This document shows positions 3,297 through 48,797 of a stretch of 64,000 bases of DNA, piece by piece. Within the stretch, counting starts at the first letter, position 1; every line of letters begins with the position of its first letter. Location of the stretch: sequence record MW812343.1; one strand, written 5' to 3'. A model generated the notes under the pieces. The model was not told the origin of the DNA and ran no database searches. It saw only the letters and a list, made by a program, of their open reading frames with translations. Both the position numbers and the translations under genes were made by a program.

Positions 3297-4608
3297 GGGT
3301 AAAACCACATTCGAGCCGGTTAAGACGGAACCCGAATACCTAACACAGCCCCAAGACGGTGTGAAGGAAAAAACCAACATCGTCACAGAGCCCACCAGAA
3401 CCACGGTAGTCGATTTAGAGCGTGTGCCCGCAGTTAACCTGTTGCCGGTCGTTGAAGGCTCCTCATGGCCGCTGCTGGCGTATTATCGTCGGTTAATGGG
3501 CAAGAACGACCCGAAGATGTTGTTCGACCCTAAACAGGATACGCCGGTACAGCAATACGACTGTATCCATTACATGGAACTGCGGGTTAACAGCCCACTT
3601 AGCCGCGACCAAGATGGCAGTAACAAGACGTTCACCATGTCGGGCAGTGCGACGATGGCCACGACGGTGGCGCCGAACGAAAACGATATCTTCACAGCGT
3701 CCCTCAAAGACAACCGTGTCGGTATCTTTAACGTCACCAGTAGCACCCGTAACTCGAATAACAAGGTCGCCACCTACACCATCGAGTACACTCTGCTCTT
3801 TGAAATGACGCCTGCCCACAAAGCCATCCTGGACAAGTGTACGGCGCACGAGTATTACTACGTCAAAGAGCGGGCGTTCACTGGCGGTGATACGCTGCTG
3901 ACTCCGAACGAGTACAACATGTTCCTCGCCTTGGGCGAGCATGTGAAAGCGATTGAGGAAACCTACTTACGCCGCTTCTTCAATGAAGATGCCCAGACGA
4001 TTCTCTTCCCAGACGATCGCTACGGGTATGCGTATGACGTGTTCTTGGCGCAGTTCGTTCGGGATATCGGTTTGCGGATGGTAGGTAAAGATGTGCGCAT
4101 CTATCCACACCCCACCAAACCGATTCGGGATATCGAAACTCTGTTCTCGGTTATCATGGCGCAGCAGCCATTGTTCCTGCAAGATGTGAACCGCAAGAAC
4201 AAAGCGTTGTCAGTCCGCTCGTTCCGTACGATGCAAACGTACAACAACGTAGGCTGGTCGAAGATTGCAGTGACCCGTTATTTCTCCGACGATGCACCCC
4301 TGCGACAGATGCCTGCCGAATGGCCGAAGTTCGATGATCTTACCAGTGAAGAAGTTTTGCTGGAAGGTACCGACGAAGCGTTGCCGGGGTTCTTGCCGTT
4401 GACTTACACCCCTTACCTACTGAGTGACGCCTTCTATTCGGGCGGTTACACCTCAGGGCTTGAGTATGCGCTACAGGCGTACCTGAACAAACAACCGGTT
4501 GCCACGAAGCTGGTACTCGATTTGGCGAAGCAGGTGCACCGCTTACCGAAGAATGCGCAGCTCTATTACGTACCGTTAATGTACGTGTTGTTGAAATACG
4601 TGAGGTAA
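3277..4608 (+). CDS. putative virion structural protein
   Basis: ATG 3277 with GAGGTG SD; coupled operon. Confidence 0.6.
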   Translation: MLQAKGKGKTTFEPVKTEPEYLTQPQDGVKEKTNIVTEPTRTTVVDLERVPAVNLLPVVEGSSWPLLAYYRRLMGKNDPKMLFDPKQDTPVQQYDCIHYMELRVNSPLSRDQDGSNKTFTMSGSATMATTVAPNENDIFTASLKDNRVGIFNVTSSTRNSNNKVATYTIEYTLLFEMTPAHKAILDKCTAHEYYYVKERAFTGGDTLLTPNEYNMFLALGEHVKAIEETYLRRFFNEDAQTILFPDDRYGYAYDVFLAQFVRDIGLRMVGKDVRIYPHPTKPIRDIETLFSVIMAQQPLFLQDVNRKNKALSVRSFRTMQTYNNVGWSKIAVTRYFSDDAPLRQMPAEWPKFDDLTSEEVLLEGTDEALPGFLPLTYTPYLLSDAFYSGGYTSGLEYALQAYLNKQPVATKLVLDLAKQVHRLPKNAQLYYVPLMYVLLKYVR

Positions 4609-40829: not shown

Positions 40830-41330
40830 ATGGATGTTATCGATTTCGAACAGCTACCCCAGCACGACTTCGACCTCGGCGTCCGTGACATGGATGGCAG
40901 CTTCGAAGAAAATGCGCGCGCGCTGTTCCAGAAATACGGTGAACTGATTATGGGCTCTGACCAGCCTGAAATTACCTTGGGTGATTTCGAGAAGCTACTG
41001 GTCGGCCTTATCACATCCCGTACCGAAGGCAGAGCATTGCTGAATGAGCTGAACTTCACCACAGTCTGTCCCGCAGATGCCGCTGGTATCCTGTCCCAAT
41101 CCATCGTTCCAACCGATGAGATTCTCGACAGTGTGGCTAAGCTGCGTGGGCCGTTCGACACGGCTGTGGAAGACTACGCCCAACAGTTAGCGGAGTCGGA
41201 ATACGCAATGGTTGCCCCTGAGGGTGAGCAGTTGCCTTCTGATGAAGAAACTGAAACGGCACGGTTGCGCCTTGCGCGTTACGTCATTACCAGCGTACTG
41301 GTTGACGATCGCGAAGAGTGCCAGCTCTAA
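40830..41330 (+). CDS. highly acidic protein
   Basis: About 35 D/E vs 12 K/R in 166 aa (hand count). Confidence 0.75.
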   Translation: MDVIDFEQLPQHDFDLGVRDMDGSFEENARALFQKYGELIMGSDQPEITLGDFEKLLVGLITSRTEGRALLNELNFTTVCPADAAGILSQSIVPTDEILDSVAKLRGPFDTAVEDYAQQLAESEYAMVAPEGEQLPSDEETETARLRLARYVITSVLVDDREECQL

Positions 41331-41337
41331 TCAAATG

Positions 41338-41369
41338 ACCTCACCTTCGGGTGAGGTTTATTTTTTTTT
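41338..41369 (+). terminator. intrinsic terminator
   Basis: ACCTCACC-TTCG-GGTGAGGT + T run. Confidence 0.9.
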
Positions 41370-41765: not shown

Positions 41766-42069
41766 TGTCCGTGATGAACTGTCTTCGCATGATTACCTCA
41801 TTCGAATGCAGTCTGCGTTTCAAAAACCATTAGGTGGCCCAACCGAAGCACGTCAGGTGTACGCGCAGGTGATTGGAGTGGATAACAAAGAGGTTCACTT
41901 CACGAACCTTGAAACCAAACTCGACTTCACCATGCCGTTAAACGTGTTCCTGTTCGTCCCTGCCATCGGGTTGTCAGTTGAGATTAGTCGCGTACATCAC
42001 CGTATTTTCTGTTGGCCTGACGCCCACAGAGAAAACAGCGATCCAATCCAGCTGCAAATCCGCTTATAA
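41743..42069 (+). CDS. hypothetical protein
   Basis: ATG 41743; overlaps previous ORF by 23 nt. Confidence 0.6.
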   Translation: MSSPSLIDVRDELSSHDYLIRMQSAFQKPLGGPTEARQVYAQVIGVDNKEVHFTNLETKLDFTMPLNVFLFVPAIGLSVEISRVHHRIFCWPDAHRENSDPIQLQIRL

Positions 42070-42148: not shown

Positions 42149-42757
42149 ATGGCTAAGGCACCAAAGAATAAAGTCTATAAAATCACCGGCCGTTCCGGCT
42201 CTGTAATCAGCTTTGTGGCGTACAACCCGATTACGGGTAATGAAGGCGCGACCATCGAACGTCTGGATCTGAAAGGGTTCGGTTACAATATGCTCCGTAA
42301 AGGCGTGAACATTATTTTCGAGGGTAAAGTTGCCCCTGAGAATCTGGTTTACGATTACGTGGTTAATCCAACCAAGCTCGTTGCTAACGGCGAACCGAAA
42401 ACCGTAGCTACACCGAAAGAAAGCAAGTCCGCCTCTAAGGCCATGCCGATCTTCGAAGTGTTGAAGCGTGTTGGTTCGACCATTCACTATCGAATTCTTG
42501 GCAGTGAGCACGGCATTGATCTGTCACTCGACCTTACAGGTTTCGGCTACAAAAAGCTGAAGAAGGGCGAGATGTTCCAGTTCGAAGGTGGGGTTGTCTC
42601 TGCTGAGAATCTGCGCATTGTTACACGCGGTAGCTCAGAAAAGACACCGCTGGTGAAAGTTGAGTATGCGGGTAAAGCGCGTAGTGGCGTGAAGACGGCG
42701 GTGAAGTCCAAGCGTGGCGCAACACCGAACGTGTCTATTCTGCGTAAGCACTTCTAA
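42149..42757 (+). CDS. basic protein with an internally duplicated domain
   Basis: LDLKGFGYNMLRKG..IIFEG.VAPENL / LDLTGFGYKKLKKG..FQFEG.VVSAENL. Confidence 0.8.
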   Translation: MAKAPKNKVYKITGRSGSVISFVAYNPITGNEGATIERLDLKGFGYNMLRKGVNIIFEGKVAPENLVYDYVVNPTKLVANGEPKTVATPKESKSASKAMPIFEVLKRVGSTIHYRILGSEHGIDLSLDLTGFGYKKLKKGEMFQFEGGVVSAENLRIVTRGSSEKTPLVKVEYAGKARSGVKTAVKSKRGATPNVSILRKHF

Positions 42758-42764
42758 TTCGTAC

Positions 42765-42801
42765 GTCCTACTCCTTCGGGGGTAGGACTGTTTTATTTTT
42801 T
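42765..42801 (+). terminator. intrinsic terminator
   Basis: GTCCTACTCC-TTCG-GGGGTAGGAC + T tract. Confidence 0.88.
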
Positions 42802-42812
42802 AAGGACTGTCG

Positions 42813-43340
42813 ATGACTACTTTTATTGCAACCAAAGATTACCTCGCAGCAGATAGAGCCGTGTTGAAAAATCGGATGGTTTACGACGATGCCAAAGTCC
42901 GGGTTATCAAAGGCCGCATTGGATACTTCTTTGGCTCCGACCACCCGACCCCAGTGGAACGTAAGGCGTTGGAGAAACACATTTACGATTACGTCTTTGC
43001 AAAGGAACCGAAGAGACAAGCTGCTGAGGATTGGATACGGGATTTCATCGAAAGCAACACCATGGTTATCATGACCCGAAAGAAGACGTTAATCGTTGAC
43101 GGTATTTCACGGCTGGCAGCGTGGTCACCGGAGATTGGTGGGCCATCACGCCACACAGGACTGACGGTAAAAGAAGACCTGTTAGAAACTCCCATCGCGT
43201 TTGGTTCTGGCGCAGAGTTAGCCCGTGCTGGTTGGGCGTGTGGGTTGACCCCTGAGAACATCATTCTGATGGTACAGAAAATTGACCCGATGTCGGGCCA
43301 CGACTTTGACGTAATTTACAGAGAGGACTTGCGTAAATGA
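42813..43340 (+). CDS. HslV/proteasome beta-like Ntn (threonine) peptidase
   Basis: N-terminal (M)TT, LAAD, DAK, AFGSGA, D..SG. Confidence 0.75.
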   Translation: MTTFIATKDYLAADRAVLKNRMVYDDAKVRVIKGRIGYFFGSDHPTPVERKALEKHIYDYVFAKEPKRQAAEDWIRDFIESNTMVIMTRKKTLIVDGISRLAAWSPEIGGPSRHTGLTVKEDLLETPIAFGSGAELARAGWACGLTPENIILMVQKIDPMSGHDFDVIYREDLRK

Positions 43341-43903
43341 GCACCGTTTCTATTGCTGGTTTTATCGTTAATGGCATGGTCTACGTGAACACCGCCGTTC
43401 AGGGTATGTCCTTACTGGCGTCTTACAACCCGGAAGCTGGGTTCGATAAGTTAGGGTGGTGGTTCCCGAACGACTCACAAGGTAAGATTTCTGATATCTT
43501 GGCGAGTGGCAACGATAACGAACGTCACGAGGATATTTCGTATTCCGGTTCTGTGCTGCGTCCCGATGGTCAGTTCTACGACATTAAGCTGGCAGGACCT
43601 GCATATCGCCTGACGTTCACGCACCAACCTGCTAACGTGATGGTGTTCCCCTCAGACACCGAATCTGCGTTTGTGGCGACATTCATTGAACATCTGTCCA
43701 TGAATCCCGACTTGGATAGCGAAAAGGGTGTGTGGTCTGCTGAGCGCATTAAGCGCATCTTAGGCTGCTTCCCCGGATGCCACAACTTCGTGGAGTTCAT
43801 GCCTATCGACGAATTGAAAGCGAAAGTACAAGCACTACCAGCGTGTGAGTTAGCACCATTCCCACGCACCCCACCACGTAAATACGAACGTGTAGATTTA
43901 TAA
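43337..43903 (+). CDS. hypothetical protein
   Basis: ATGA-coupled. Confidence 0.7.
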   Translation: MSTVSIAGFIVNGMVYVNTAVQGMSLLASYNPEAGFDKLGWWFPNDSQGKISDILASGNDNERHEDISYSGSVLRPDGQFYDIKLAGPAYRLTFTHQPANVMVFPSDTESAFVATFIEHLSMNPDLDSEKGVWSAERIKRILGCFPGCHNFVEFMPIDELKAKVQALPACELAPFPRTPPRKYERVDL

Positions 43904-43946
43904 CAGCATCACCCATTTTAATGACTATCACAAAGAGAATCAGAAC

Positions 43947-44609
43947 ATGGCTAAGCAGAAGAAACCCCGCAACAAAAAATATAACCCGCAGCAAGCCCAC
44001 GCAGAAACGGCCCGTCAGGTCGTTCAAAATGCGTTGGCGCGTATCTCTTTTATTGGCGCATCTAACCGCCGTATTCAACCGTACGGCGGTCGTGGGTTCC
44101 AATACACTGTTTCTCGCCCTGTACGTGTAACCGTATCGGCTGCACTGGCAGAAACGTTGTTTGAGGATACCCGACCGTGGACAGTGTGGATGGCACACTA
44201 CGCGGTCAATGCCGAAGGTGGTCTTGAGGTGGAATCCGGTGTACTGACGCTCGATGAGTATACACTCACGGACTTCACGGAAAACATCGACAAGTTAGTG
44301 GACCACATGAAGCCAGACTACATGGTCAACAATCCTGACTACGTGGGGTACGCATTCTTCGCGTCACCGAACGAACGTTACGATTTCACCCATGACACTA
44401 CTGATGAACGTTTAATCGAAAACTTCATCGCGTCCGGCGTGCTGGAAAAAGAGAATCATCTTCCCCAGCATGTTTTAAACGTCACCAAAGAAGAACTGAT
44501 CATCATGCTGATGGCAGACCACACGAAGTTTGACGTCAACATCGGTTATCACCAGCGAGGCGAAGGCGATGATTATCGCGTCGCCGACAAACAAGTTATC
44601 GGAGAGTAA
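43947..44609 (+). CDS. hypothetical protein with basic N-terminus
   Basis: MAKQKKPRNKKYNP. Confidence 0.75.
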   Translation: MAKQKKPRNKKYNPQQAHAETARQVVQNALARISFIGASNRRIQPYGGRGFQYTVSRPVRVTVSAALAETLFEDTRPWTVWMAHYAVNAEGGLEVESGVLTLDEYTLTDFTENIDKLVDHMKPDYMVNNPDYVGYAFFASPNERYDFTHDTTDERLIENFIASGVLEKENHLPQHVLNVTKEELIIMLMADHTKFDVNIGYHQRGEGDDYRVADKQVIGE

Positions 44610-44612
44610 TAA

Positions 44613-45176
44613 ATGAAATTCTGGGAGCGTTTTTGCCGCCTGTTTAAGAAAGCCCCTGAGCCGGTGTCAGACGGTGATCGTTATACCCAAATCGTCCGTG
44701 ATTATTTTAACGCAGGTAATCACAACGTGGTGGAGTTGTGTGATGCGATTGGCATGACACCCCGCCAGTTATATTTCGCAGTGAATGACGATAACGTGCG
44801 AGCGAATATTCTTCCGAGGTTGCCTGAGAAGGCGCGTACTGAACTTCGTGATGAACTCACCGCTCGCGCTTTTAGTCGCCAGCCCGTTTCTTTATTCCGC
44901 CCCACTACCGAACGCCATTCGTTCATCAACCTGAATGAACTTATGGAACATGTCCATTTGTTACACCGTGATTACCAATTAAGTAACGCGGGAAAGGATA
45001 GCGTTATCAAGGCATATATTCACTCGCTGACGCCGCGTACAGTGAGGATTGCTTTTAGTACGCCGAATCATGAATTCAACGTGGGTATTATCGAAGATAT
45101 CAACGTTGTTCAACAAAACCTGCTTATGGTGAATTATGGAAAACTTAACCCCCGTGGAAATCGTCAAAGTTTTTGA
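44613..45176 (+). CDS. hypothetical protein, possible HTH
   Basis: VVELCDAIGMTPRQLYFAV. Confidence 0.6.
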   Translation: MKFWERFCRLFKKAPEPVSDGDRYTQIVRDYFNAGNHNVVELCDAIGMTPRQLYFAVNDDNVRANILPRLPEKARTELRDELTARAFSRQPVSLFRPTTERHSFINLNELMEHVHLLHRDYQLSNAGKDSVIKAYIHSLTPRTVRIAFSTPNHEFNVGIIEDINVVQQNLLMVNYGKLNPRGNRQSF

Positions 45177-46881
45177 CCGATTTGTTCATGGTCAAACATT
45201 GGCGAAGAAGATGTTGGCGATAGCGTTACGTAACCGCGTACGGGTAGCGATGCTTCCCCTCGGTGAACGCAACAGTGTTCGCAAACAGAATCTTCTGTTA
45301 CTGGGGCCTACGGGCTCCGGTAAGACGGCTTTAATGCGTGTGCTGAAAACCCAATTCGGTTTGCCGGTATTAGAGCTGGACATGACCGGGTTTTCTGAAA
45401 CAGGCTACGTGGGCCGTAACCTCAACACTGTGGGGACGGATTTACAAACCTTGACCCGTAGTGTCAGTTTGCCGGATTGGTACGTGGAGATGCGTACGGG
45501 AATGACGCTGGAGAAAGATGAACAGCGTTATACGCGCGACGAACTTGAGGCACTGAAAGCCAAAGAGTACGAAGCGGAAAGTGCGGCTAAGCAGGCAGTG
45601 TGGAAAGCAGGCCGTGAAGCGAAAGAGAACCACGAAGCGCTGTTGAAGAACATGGGCGTATTCCCAGACGATAATACCTACAACCATTATCGCATGGTCT
45701 ACTACATGCGTGCGTTTTTGGTCGGATATCACGCCATGAAGAATCTCCCATACGACGTCATCGACTTTGCTGATATTGAAATGCTTCCGGGTCAGAGGCT
45801 CATCGATGTCGCTAAGAAAGTTGTCGAGTTGTTTGAGAAGATGATCGGTAAACCGGTTACCAGTATCGACGATTTGAAAGACGACAACGTCGAAGATGGC
45901 GTTGAGGAGATGATGGAGAACAACCCTGCGTTATTGGGTGAGTTCATGAGTCTGATGGCTTACAAAGAGATTCTTGAAATCACTCTGCAACAGGGCATCG
46001 ACATGCTCAGCAGCAATCCGCCTGCCGCTTGCGTTTCCTCAAGCGATTGGTACGACGTCGCACATAGCTTTGAAGAAGCCGATGAAGAGAAGATACCGCC
46101 GGGCATCGCGTGGCGTAATCTGGACTTCTCTGAGTTCGCACTCTATATCTGCATCATGTTGGTACGCGACCCTGAAGGGTTGGAGGAGGTCTTCGAAGAT
46201 TGTGAAGACTTCACCCGTTTCGCTGACGAGAAGCTCTGGGCTTACACCGTACCTACTGTAGAACCTGTAGTGCCTAAGGGCAAACGTAATGTCCTCGCGA
46301 AGAAAGACCTTGATAAAGTTGCCAACTGTAATGGGCGGGACTTTGTTGAGAACTTCGGAGTGGTGTTCATGGATGAGATTGACAAGCTCATTGAAACGGA
46401 CACCACGGGACGTACGCATGTTTCTCGCAGTGGCGTGCAGCGTAGTTTGCTGAAGATGGTCGAGGGTGGGTTGTACTCAGGGATTGATACCACGAATATC
46501 TTGTTCGTCGGTGCCGGTTCCTTTGCCGAAGCCCCGGTCACTAAACTGATGCCGGAACTGCAAGGTCGCTTTACACTCCGAGCAGAACTGGAACCGCTGG
46601 ATAAGGAAGCGTTGGTATCCATCTGTCGAATGGACAGCAGTGAGTTCCATGCAATGGTGCGTCTCTTGCGAATCGAAAAGGTTGACGTCAAATACGACAT
46701 TGACACATTCGAGTACATCGCAGAGAAAACCCTCGAAGCGAACGCTGTCGATAACCTCGGCGCACGCCGCTTGGCTGCCATTGTTGAGGCGCTGTTCCAG
46801 GATGCGCTGTATGAACCTAACAAATATACAACGTCGGGGTATGATCTGACCGGCCAAACCTTGAGGAAAAAGGATGCTTGA
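45136..46881 (+). CDS. hslU: HslU (ClpY) AAA+ unfoldase
   Basis: HGQ..AK...AIALRNR, LGPTGSGKT, ETGYVG, VFMDEIDK, SR.GVQR.LL, MPELQGRF, NLGARRL. Confidence 0.93.
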   Translation: MENLTPVEIVKVFDRFVHGQTLAKKMLAIALRNRVRVAMLPLGERNSVRKQNLLLLGPTGSGKTALMRVLKTQFGLPVLELDMTGFSETGYVGRNLNTVGTDLQTLTRSVSLPDWYVEMRTGMTLEKDEQRYTRDELEALKAKEYEAESAAKQAVWKAGREAKENHEALLKNMGVFPDDNTYNHYRMVYYMRAFLVGYHAMKNLPYDVIDFADIEMLPGQRLIDVAKKVVELFEKMIGKPVTSIDDLKDDNVEDGVEEMMENNPALLGEFMSLMAYKEILEITLQQGIDMLSSNPPAACVSSSDWYDVAHSFEEADEEKIPPGIAWRNLDFSEFALYICIMLVRDPEGLEEVFEDCEDFTRFADEKLWAYTVPTVEPVVPKGKRNVLAKKDLDKVANCNGRDFVENFGVVFMDEIDKLIETDTTGRTHVSRSGVQRSLLKMVEGGLYSGIDTTNILFVGAGSFAEAPVTKLMPELQGRFTLRAELEPLDKEALVSICRMDSSEFHAMVRLLRIEKVDVKYDIDTFEYIAEKTLEANAVDNLGARRLAAIVEALFQDALYEPNKYTTSGYDLTGQTLRKKDA

Positions 46882-47071
46882 TTTTATCGTCTCCATCATT
46901 GTCATCGTGATGGCTCTTAGCATGTTAGGTAGTTGGATTGGGCGTATGTCAGTACGGCGTAATTGGTCATTCCCCCTCATGTTAGTTGTGGCACTCGTAC
47001 TCGGTGGGTTTATCGGTAATGTCTATTTCAGCGCGGTGGTCATCCCGCTGTATAACAACATCGGAGGATAA
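46874..47071 (+). CDS. small two-TM membrane protein
   Basis: Two hydrophobic segments; AGGA SD. Confidence 0.7.
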   Translation: MLDFIVSIIVIVMALSMLGSWIGRMSVRRNWSFPLMLVVALVLGGFIGNVYFSAVVIPLYNNIGG

Positions 47072-47074
47072 CGC

Positions 47075-47803
47075 GTGGAAACCGACAAGTACAAGATGCG
47101 TGTAGAGAAAGTCCGCAAATCCTACACGCAAGCTGGGAAGACCGTGAATGAGGGTAGCATTCACGCATCAGGGCAGGTGTTGTGCCTGCCGAAAACGGCG
47201 TTTGTGGACGGTGCAGATTGGCAGCAGATATTTCGTCGTTGGCTAAACTGCACTGCCCGTTGTGAAACATCGCCGGTACGCCACGCTAATCACCAATATC
47301 CCGAATCTATCTTCCGTACCTCGAAGATTCAGGAGGAGCGTGTTTGTGCGACGTTGTTAGGTGGCAGTATGGATGTGAATGGCGACTACGTCACGCTTAC
47401 CACCAACGTGGTGCCCTATGGCCCTTACGGCGATAAGTTAGCGACGTACATGCGTGAGCAACAAGAGCTGATCATCGTTCCGCGCTTCATTCTGGACAAA
47501 GACGGTAAAATCACCGGCGTACCTGCATGGGATCTGGATTTGCCGTCAGGCTGGGACATCGTCCCGTACGAGTACAATGACGTACAGGATGAAGTCTTCG
47601 TCGGCGAGCTTGCTTATCTCATCGAAAAGTGCAAAGCTCACAGCCTCAATTGGGCGATGCACTATTCCGATACGGACGACCTCTGGCGTTTCACGCTGTC
47701 GACTTACCACGCGGTGGTTTGCTTCGATGGTGACTGGAAAAAGTTATGCGATGCGGTGGAAGATGCCACTGCGTATTTTGACGGCTTAGATAATCATGGA
47801 TAA
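47075..47803 (+). CDS. prohead-protease-like (T4 gp21/phiKZ gp175 fold) paralog, catalytic motifs degenerate
   Basis: RCETSP, I.EERVCATL, V.PYGPYG..L, VPR, AWDL. Confidence 0.5.
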   Translation: METDKYKMRVEKVRKSYTQAGKTVNEGSIHASGQVLCLPKTAFVDGADWQQIFRRWLNCTARCETSPVRHANHQYPESIFRTSKIQEERVCATLLGGSMDVNGDYVTLTTNVVPYGPYGDKLATYMREQQELIIVPRFILDKDGKITGVPAWDLDLPSGWDIVPYEYNDVQDEVFVGELAYLIEKCKAHSLNWAMHYSDTDDLWRFTLSTYHAVVCFDGDWKKLCDAVEDATAYFDGLDNHG

Positions 47804-48278
47804 GAACATGGACAAGAAAGAACGTAATCTGATCGAAATCACAGGTAAAGGCGAAGACAGCAACGGCAAGTTTTACTCGGTGGTGCTGTTAGACCAAACT
47901 AAGATGAATGCAGGTGGACGTCAATACACCGGCGACATCGCACATCTGGTTCGTGGTATCAAACGTATGCCACGTCTGTTCTGTGAAGTCGACCCGTACC
48001 ATGACTACCGTTTTCAGTTCCCGGTAACGGATGACCGCAGTGTGTCTGGGCCATGCACGGTAGAAATGAAAAACGTGTGTGCTTCTATCGAGAACATTCG
48101 TCACGATAAGATGAACCAGCGTGTGTCAGCGGAACTGCGTCCGTGGGGCCCACAAGCTGCAATGGTGCGTAATCTGCTGGATGGTGCAAACCAAAACGTG
48201 ACCTTCGGGATGCGCGCGCTGGCAACCCCTGACGGTAAAATCGACAAAGTCATCACATGGGACCTGTTACCAGAATGA
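47796..48278 (+). CDS. prohead-protease-like paralog, catalytic motifs degenerate
   Basis: NAGGRQY, FCEVDP, V.MKNVCASI, LRPWGPQA...LL, FGMRAL, VITWDL. Confidence 0.55.
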   Translation: MDKNMDKKERNLIEITGKGEDSNGKFYSVVLLDQTKMNAGGRQYTGDIAHLVRGIKRMPRLFCEVDPYHDYRFQFPVTDDRSVSGPCTVEMKNVCASIENIRHDKMNQRVSAELRPWGPQAAMVRNLLDGANQNVTFGMRALATPDGKIDKVITWDLLPE

Positions 48279-48475
48279 ATGTACCCGACCTGTTTTACTG
48301 GTGTGTCATGGTGTTAAGTGGTTTCTTCCTTATCCAGTGTGTCATTGGCACGGTTAAGGATTTAATGAAAGGCGAATTGATAGGCGCGTTCGTCGAGTTA
48401 GTGTTTGCTGTCCTCGCATGGAACATTCACCGTTGGGCGTTTGTTCATTTGGTACCATTGCAAACACTGTTCTAA
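48275..48475 (+). CDS. small two-TM membrane protein
   Basis: ATGA-coupled, hydrophobic. Confidence 0.65.
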   Translation: MNVPDLFYWCVMVLSGFFLIQCVIGTVKDLMKGELIGAFVELVFAVLAWNIHRWAFVHLVPLQTLF

Positions 48476-48486
48476 TGAAAAAAAGC

Positions 48487-48509
48487 TCAGATAGATATTA
48501 TCTTGGTGA
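48487..48509 (+). promoter_or_regulatory. early promoter
   Basis: TCAGATAGATATTATCTTGGTGA. Confidence 0.78.
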
Positions 48510-48581
48510 GCTTTCCATTATTAGTGCCAAGGAAGGCGTGTTTTACAATTACAATAAATTAAAATAATTAAGGAGTCCATC

Positions 48582-48758
48582 ATGGATAAAATTTATATCG
48601 TTACAGCAGTTCTCTTCACCGTCGCTTGCTTACTGAGCTGGCGCGTATCTTCTAACATGAAACGTCGTAAGTGCCCACCGGGTGCCATTGCGTTTGGTGT
48701 TCAAGCCTGTGTTTACGGTTTCGTTGCCGTGTTCACCGGTGCGAAGTATTTCTTCTAG
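48582..48758 (+). CDS. 58-aa two-TM protein (not in ORF track)
   Basis: MDKIYIVTAVLFTVACLLSWRVSSNMKRRKCPPGAIAFGVQACVYGFVAVFTGAKYFF; AAGGAG SD; own promoter and terminator. Confidence 0.8.
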   Translation: MDKIYIVTAVLFTVACLLSWRVSSNMKRRKCPPGAIAFGVQACVYGFVAVFTGAKYFF

Positions 48759-48762
48759 CAGT

Positions 48763-48797
48763 AAAAAGGGGCACGAAAGTGTCCTTTTTCTTTTTTC
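48763..48797 (+). terminator. intrinsic terminator
   Basis: AAAAAGGGGCAC-GAAA-GTGTCCTTTTT + T run. Confidence 0.85.

Follow-up and report, generated by a model that had tools for sequence, protein, structure and literature searches.

The closest described system to the locus considered here is the bacterial HslVU (ClpQY) protease, which pairs an HslV-type N-terminal nucleophile (Ntn) peptidase with an HslU-type AAA+ unfoldase. Anbu and BPH are HslV/beta-type Ntn proteins without a dedicated HslU and provide a precedent for an HslV-like particle that has no cognate ATPase. Anbu is homologous to HslV (PMC6376114). In bacterial HslVU, HslU's C-terminal tail, which carries a strictly conserved Phe, inserts between HslV subunits and activates HslV (PMC4106860, PMC6429459). 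Among phages, the HslU-like protein gp116 of Erwinia phage RAY has been reported inside the phage nucleus, and pSal-SNUABM-04 has been described as having HslV genes at open reading frame (ORF) 1 and ORF 116 and encoding no HslU (PMC7823757). Here we analyse a 64,000-nucleotide stretch of sequence record MW812343.1 (the window; window coordinate = record coordinate - 62000), in which one operon between terminators at 42765 and 48764 encodes a divergent HslV-type peptidase and an HslU-type AAA+ unfoldase. A sequence-only reading of this DNA had proposed that the two form a two-component HslUV-type protease. Both genes are indeed phage-encoded within one transcription unit; a working pair is not established, since the activating tail is absent, co-occurrence is loose and the peptidase is coupled instead to a 188-residue protein, o188. 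Our best explanation, to which we give an even chance, is an accessory peptidase cassette (HslV-like protein plus o188) whose neighbour is a stand-alone unfoldase of the HslU type that lacks the tail.

From base 42000 to base 48000 the window matches, with 100% identity, Erwinia phage pEa_SNUABM_6 (MW812343.1), which belongs to the genus Machinavirus, family Chimalliviridae (NCBI taxonomy). Every gene of this stretch is labelled 'hypothetical protein' in MW812343.1 itself. The orthologues of the peptidase and the ATPase in pEa_SNUABM_43 (MW384823.1; 77% and 82% identity) are already named 'putative HslV-like' and 'putative HslU-like ATP-dependent protease', so the HslV/HslU idea is not new as annotation. 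The literature that we found contained no experimental work on a phage HslV-like/HslU-like pair and no experimentally defined role for either protein. The ORFs, motifs and spacing on which the sequence-only reading was built were all present, and its coordinates were correct.

The peptidase gene ('HslV-A', 42813..43340, + strand) encodes 175 residues that begin MTTFIATKDYLAAD, with LAAD at residues 11-14, K28, GSG at 131-133, D158 and D166. The protein resembles bacterial HslV in its fold, its length (~175 residues), its Asp/Lys/GSG set and its N-terminal Thr, which follows the initiator Met immediately and without an intervening propeptide. It matched PHROG 1040, 'peptidase HslV family', with an expect value (E) of 1e-12, and 16 of the 17 members of the operon-peptidase family matched the same PHROG. 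Unlike its bacterial counterparts it was recognised by no model in Pfam or NCBIfam, PF00227 (Proteasome) and the hslV model included; Pfam matches were likewise absent for all 17 family members. The family is small and very divergent, since a profile search of 1.84 billion representative proteins recovered just 14 relatives. A search for related loci with a narrow peptidase alignment returned phage Huxley alone, and tblastn with the distant family members P0016 and P0012 added no isolate lineages. All members of the 17-sequence alignment have Thr2, Thr3, Asp14, Gly131, Gly133, Asp158 and Asp166; Met1 is almost invariant and Lys28 conserved.

The relationship to HslV was visible only to the deeper comparisons. 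Neither the single sequence (phmmer) nor a six-sequence profile had a PDB match, and an hhalign comparison with one Salmonella HslV did not reach significance. The 17-sequence profile, by contrast, found Trypanosoma brucei HslV (4hnz, E 7.6e-4) as its top PDB match, followed by 20S beta subunits, and the peptidase Asp, Lys and GSG lined up with the D, K and GSGG positions of 4hnz. In HslV (peptidase family T1B), a dodecamer built from two stacked rings of six, the active site consists of Asp17, Lys33 and Gly-Ser-Gly beside the N-terminal Thr. An AlphaFold2 (AF2) model of the peptidase was predicted with a mean local confidence (pLDDT) of 89 and a predicted template modelling score (pTM) of 0.82. 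When this model was compared with the PDB by Foldseek, the 14 top matches were all HslV (E 2e-7 to 7e-6; template modelling (TM) scores 0.54-0.59; top match probability 1.00), again followed by 20S beta subunits. Identity to bacterial HslV in the structural alignments was 13-17%. Nothing in sequence or fold tied the peptidase specifically to Anbu or BPH, the top matches of both profile and Foldseek searches being HslV proper. We conclude that the 175-residue protein is a true Ntn protein of the HslV type, strongly diverged and with an intact catalytic set; it is presumably a protease and would presumably have its initiator Met removed. The Ntn peptidase identity proposed from the sequence is therefore borne out by the PHROG match, the conserved MTT, D and GSG positions and the best PDB profile match, and the proteasome-beta/HslV (alpha-beta-beta-alpha) fold on which that proposal depended is present in the model.

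The ATPase gene (45136..46881, + strand) encodes a 581-residue AAA+ unfoldase of the hexameric HslU type (ClpX/HslU clade), as judged from PDB and NCBIfam searches and from an alignment with Salmonella HslU. Walker A (GPTGSGKT, 57-64), the pore loop (GYVG, 90-93), Walker B (DEIDK, 413-417), the Arg finger (PELQGRF, 473-479) and sensor-2 (GARR, 542-545) are all recognisable. Solved HslU structures matched with E 5.7e-47 and ClpX with ~1e-24, which, together with these motifs and an I-domain inserted where HslU has its own, upholds the earlier HslU assignment. The best NCBIfam model was TIGR00390 (hslU) at 199 bits; because the equivalog cut-off is 362 bits, we regard the protein as a divergent member of the HslU family and not as an equivalog. 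Two features set it apart from bacterial HslU. Its I-domain, located as in Salmonella HslU within the large AAA+ subdomain and past the pore loop, spans ~288 residues (approximately 107-394), is acidic (isoelectric point (pI) 4.5) and is roughly twice the bacterial size. Moreover, the phage protein ends ...LRKKDA, whereas Salmonella HslU goes on with ALVADEDLSRFIL. In the same alignment the proteins from pEa_SNUABM_6, Caitlin, the metagenomic locus L014, SPAsTU, Wellington and CR5 all stop 11-13 residues before ...EDLSRFIL. Since the C-terminal tail is missing, canonical HslU-HslV docking is excluded at the sequence level.

RAY gp116 is a useful comparison. Like the window ATPase, it is an accessory, chimallivirus-encoded HslU-type AAA+ protein without the ...EDLSRFIL tail; unlike it, gp116 carries an unrelated C-terminal extension of its own. 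The two proteins are distant (phmmer E 2e-27, ~32% identity over the AAA+ parts), and gp116 may not be an orthologue of the window ATPase. No HslV-like gene was found within 9 kb of gp116, and RAY was absent from all tblastn match lists for the HslV-like proteins. The RAY example shows that a chimallivirus HslU-like protein can act without a phage HslV. We did not transfer the nuclear localization of gp116 to the window ATPase, given that the two are only distantly related.

The two genes belong to one apparent transcription unit. In a terminator scan strong hairpins were confined to intergenic gaps (41337-58, 42765-88 and 48764-89). The hairpin at 42765..42788 (+ strand; 10-bp stem, 6 GC, T-run) closes the upstream gene and forms the 5' boundary of the unit, and that at 48764..48789 (+ strand; 11-bp stem and T-run) is its likely 3' end. 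Because these strong terminator-like hairpins bracket the genes, we place the unit at ~42790 to 48790. The stretch from peptidase to ATPase contained just two weak, chance-level hairpins (44029 and 45691), both within coding sequence, in agreement with the earlier statement that no terminator separates the pair. Genes are tightly packed: the peptidase and the o188 ORF overlap in an ATGA, the 187-residue ORF and the ATPase overlap by 41 nt, and the ATPase and the 65-residue ORF by 8 nt. As in bacterial HslVU, the peptidase gene lies 5' of the ATPase gene in a single transcription unit. In Salmonella, however, the gap is 9 bp, whereas here it measures 1,796 bp and holds three ORFs of 188, 220 and 187 residues.

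The first of these, o188 (43337..43903, + strand), starts within the ATGA overlap with the peptidase stop codon and adjoins the peptidase in ~11 lineages; such an obligate neighbour is unknown in bacteria. By phmmer, hidden Markov model (HMM) and jackhmmer searches, an o188 homologue lies directly 3' of the peptidase in the window, pEa_SNUABM_43, Huxley, L012, L013, L014/15, L016, L017/18, CR5, L022/23, L025 and, twice, L020. Peptidase and o188 are jointly absent from Caitlin, SPAsTU and Wellington. The AF2 model of o188 (pLDDT 86) had significant structural relatives only among uncharacterised jumbo-phage proteins (Huxley, Derbicus, PhiEaH1, Bosolaphorus and RP12). Against the PDB, Foldseek returned nothing significant for this model, the matches being mostly 20S beta subunits with E >= 0.09 and TM ~0.3; the structure search also gave a weak match to a phage 'proteasome subunit beta' (E 0.16). 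The o188 profile had no PDB matches, hhalign detected no similarity to the peptidase family even with 11 sequences, and no conserved N-terminal Thr was seen in the o188 family. The idea that o188 is a hidden Ntn paralogue stands as an unproven hint; the protein may serve as a silent subunit, a cap, a regulator or a substrate.

Two metagenomic contigs show further arrangements of the pair. In L020:1843-4357 (Logan ERR1301552 contig) the whole peptidase and o188-type pair is a tandem duplicate, in the order peptidase-like (1843-2460), partner-like (2457-2993), peptidase-like (3398-4123) and a partner-like fragment that runs to the contig end; one of the peptidase copies has 241 residues and an acidic C-terminal extension. 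In L012:10001-11488 (Logan ERR11042387 contig, 110 kb) the peptidase/o188 cassette has relocated to a different genome neighbourhood, where it lies 3' of two genes, one RNA polymerase beta-type and one helicase-like, and is followed by a Macro-domain protein.

It had been suggested that the ORFs between peptidase and ATPase might be adaptors. The suggestion suits the first, o188, as a dedicated partner found directly downstream of the peptidase, and does not suit the second. The 220-residue ORF (43947..44609, + strand; PHROG 6965) is a backbone gene that is kept in relatives with or without peptidase or ATPase, and since it occurs in loci lacking the one and in loci lacking the other we rejected it as a dedicated adaptor. 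The third ORF (44613..45176, + strand; PHROG 11712) encodes a basic protein of 187 residues (pI 9.2), and its 3' end overlaps the ATPase start. A homologue also lies directly 5' of the ATPase in Caitlin, Wellington and L014; this basic protein may belong with the ATPase.

We then compared the distribution of the two enzymes. A full-length ATPase homologue occurs in 28 phage records, and nine more (the CR5 group) carry a longer homologue that was matched as two pieces. The peptidase is found in 19 phage records only, comprising Machinavirus proper and the CR5/Derbicus group. In Caitlin, SPAsTU, Wellington and RAY the peptidase-family HMM matched nothing within 9 kb of the ATPase gene. Conversely, no ATPase was found within 10 kb 3' of the peptidase in L017/18, L012 or L024, all from incomplete genomes; the remaining metagenomic contigs are too short to judge. 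L012 is the closest relative outside Machinavirus (52% identity), and L017/18 has both the peptidase and the backbone 220-residue ORF. The co-occurrence that a working pair would lead one to expect is hence partial: the genes are together in Machinavirus, the CR5 group, L014/15 and L022, whereas the ATPase is alone in the four phages named above and the peptidase lacks a nearby ATPase in the three metagenomic loci. The genomic link between peptidase and ATPase is suggestive without being tight, and shared ancestry accounts for part of it.

A second HslV-like paralogue complicates the picture. It has 157 residues (MTTIAYDGK...) and is encoded outside the window at ~1-474 of MW812343.1 (L006:1-474), and in pSal-SNUABM-04 at L005:1-474. 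In pEa_SNUABM_6 it is annotated from position 67 only, its start codon apparently lying across the origin of the circular record. This SPN3US-type paralogue shares with the operon peptidase the PHROG 1040 family, the MTT N-terminus and a GSGG motif, and is a distant homologue by the operon-peptidase family HMM (E ~1e-9). It differs in being a separate gene ~105 kb away, in being followed by an ORF of ~113 residues (pSal-SNUABM-04, pEa_SNUABM_6) with no match to o188, and in its much wider distribution. The latter comprises 62 phage records, including SPN3US-type phages and small, 48-kb Klebsiella phages that have no HslU-like gene. In pSal-SNUABM-04 (MT710307.1) the ATPase orthologue at 106144-107874 is labelled 'putative DnaA protein', apparently an annotation error, and this label accounts for the published description of HslV genes without an HslU (PMC7823757).

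Taken together, these comparisons lead us to infer that peptidase and ATPase are two modules and not one canonical machine. The first module would be the two-gene cassette of the peptidase and its translationally coupled o188. Such a cassette appears to be accessory: it is present in some relatives only, relocates, and duplicates as a pair. Once the initiator Met is removed, the N-terminal Thr would serve as the nucleophile of the peptidase, alongside the intact Asp/Lys/GSG set. The cassette would most likely form a self-compartmentalised peptidase that relies on o188 for its assembly, gating or specificity. The second module would be the tail-less ATPase, preceded by the overlapping basic ORF. 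It seems widespread in this chimallivirus clade, including phages in which no HslV homologue is detectable, and its main activity is most likely to unfold or remodel phage or host proteins on its own, driven by ATP. Any cooperation between peptidase and ATPase would need a different interface, possibly provided by o188. Several points weigh against this explanation. On its own, bacterial HslV has almost no activity and requires an activator, which makes the simple HslUV reading an inviting one. All 19 peptidase-bearing isolate records carry the ATPase, on the same strand and 1.8-2.3 kb 3' of the peptidase. The order peptidase then ATPase recurs in L014/15 and L022, and in pEa_SNUABM_6 no terminator parts the two. 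In the metagenomic loci without a nearby ATPase, that gene could sit elsewhere in the genome.

Much of this is what one would expect if the two phage proteins were a true two-component ATP-dependent protease with tail-independent docking, which could occur through the giant I-domain or by bridging through o188. The genes share an operon uninterrupted by a terminator, their order is the same in Machinavirus, the CR5 group and both metagenomic loci just named, every peptidase-bearing isolate has both, and the catalytic residues of both proteins are intact. We nevertheless consider such a pair possible rather than probable. The HslV-activating tail is missing from the window ATPase and from each of the six phage homologues aligned with it, ATPases are common in phages that lack the peptidase, and some loci have the cassette with no ATPase close by. 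In addition, the ATPase is the same in length and architecture whether or not its phage carries the peptidase (pEa_SNUABM_6, 581 residues; Caitlin, 579 residues; 59% identity), and hence shows no docking element specific to the peptidase. A variant in which the peptidase and a silent o188 subunit, possibly of degenerate beta fold, make up a proteasome-like particle that the ATPase serves through a non-canonical interface is in our view rather improbable. Were it true, the peptidase/o188 particle and the tail-less ATPase would give nucleus-forming jumbo phages an ATP-dependent protease whose architecture has not been described before.

The missing tail could also point away from the phage ATPase altogether. 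The aligned enterobacterial HslU (Salmonella) does end ...EDLSRFIL, and HslV-like genes are widespread in HslU-less phages (SPN3US-type, 48-kb Klebsiella phages; here the second paralogue), which would be consistent with a tail-bearing host HslU activating the phage peptidase and o188 and so redirecting host proteolysis, the phage ATPase being unrelated. We think this unlikely: the peptidase has no Pfam match and only 13-17% identity to bacterial HslV, and because of this extreme divergence conservation of the tail-binding pocket is unproven. Alternatively, the ATPase might partner the paralogue at the start of the genome record instead of the operon peptidase. Besides pEa_SNUABM_6, that paralogue occurs in most of the relatives with an ATPase but no operon peptidase (Caitlin, ChrisDB, SPAsTU, pEa_4/8/9/29, SPLA3 and 1252). 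The argument from the absent tail applies to it equally, however; it is common in phages that have no ATPase (SPN3US and ~20 relatives, and small phages of Klebsiella and Proteus), does not feature in the match lists for the ATPase-bearing CR5 or Wellington/Kwan groups, and lies ~105 kb from the ATPase gene, all of which makes this partnership very unlikely. Least probable of all, and barely credible to us, is that the HslV-like protein is not a protease and instead performs other Ntn chemistry, as a connectase-like ligase or an amidase, or is a structural protein. Connectase is a relative of proteasome beta subunits, and the fold is able to support other reactions; connectase was also among the weak fold matches of o188, the peptidase sequence is very diverged and its TM score to HslV is only ~0.56. 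The proteasome-type catalytic set (Thr1, Asp, Lys, GSG) is nonetheless conserved family-wide, and the top structural matches are HslV peptidases and not connectase.

The ATPase, a tail-less HslU, is an accessory gene across several groups of these jumbo Enterobacterales phages and is full-length in 28 records. Recognising it, together with a peptidase that has a dedicated 188-residue partner, turns a vague annotation into testable questions: whether these phages run regulated proteolysis of their own, in which compartment, and what it acts on, be it host defence proteins or intermediates of phage assembly. Cooperation between peptidase and ATPase, should it occur, would show that an HslU motor and an HslV chamber can be coupled in a second way.

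Downstream of the ATPase the transcription unit continues with small hydrophobic ORFs and prohead-protease paralogues. A 65-residue membrane-type ORF (46874..47071, + strand), which overlaps the ATPase stop codon and has homologues in L001 and L011, is one of three small, strongly hydrophobic ORFs in the ATPase/S80 part of the unit that probably encode membrane proteins, the others being at 48257-48475 (72 residues) and 48582-48758 (58 residues). Directly 3' of the ATPase, within 42790-48790, a pair of paralogues of the phiKZ-type prohead protease (S80) is encoded by overlapping genes. The first (47075..47803, + strand; 242 residues) matched PHROG 7478 with E 2e-17, and an orthologue is labelled 'prohead core protein protease'. 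The second (47796..48278, + strand; 160 residues) matched PHROG 7478 with E 2e-53 and Pfam Peptidase_S80 with 30 bits (cut-off 23.4 bits); its SPAsTU homologue is labelled a virion structural protein. Just 5' of the terminator at 42765, a 202-residue ORF (42149-42757) has an internal tandem duplication. PHROG 12339 matches two stretches of it, the motif ...L(D/S)L(K/T)GFGY..L(R/K)KG....FEG.V..ENL occurs twice, and several relatives are shorter and of single-copy size. Further upstream, 3' of the ORF at 40830-41330, the hairpin at 41337-41358 (GACCTCACC-TTCG-GGTGAGGTT) has T-runs on its flanks and scores as a terminator on both strands.

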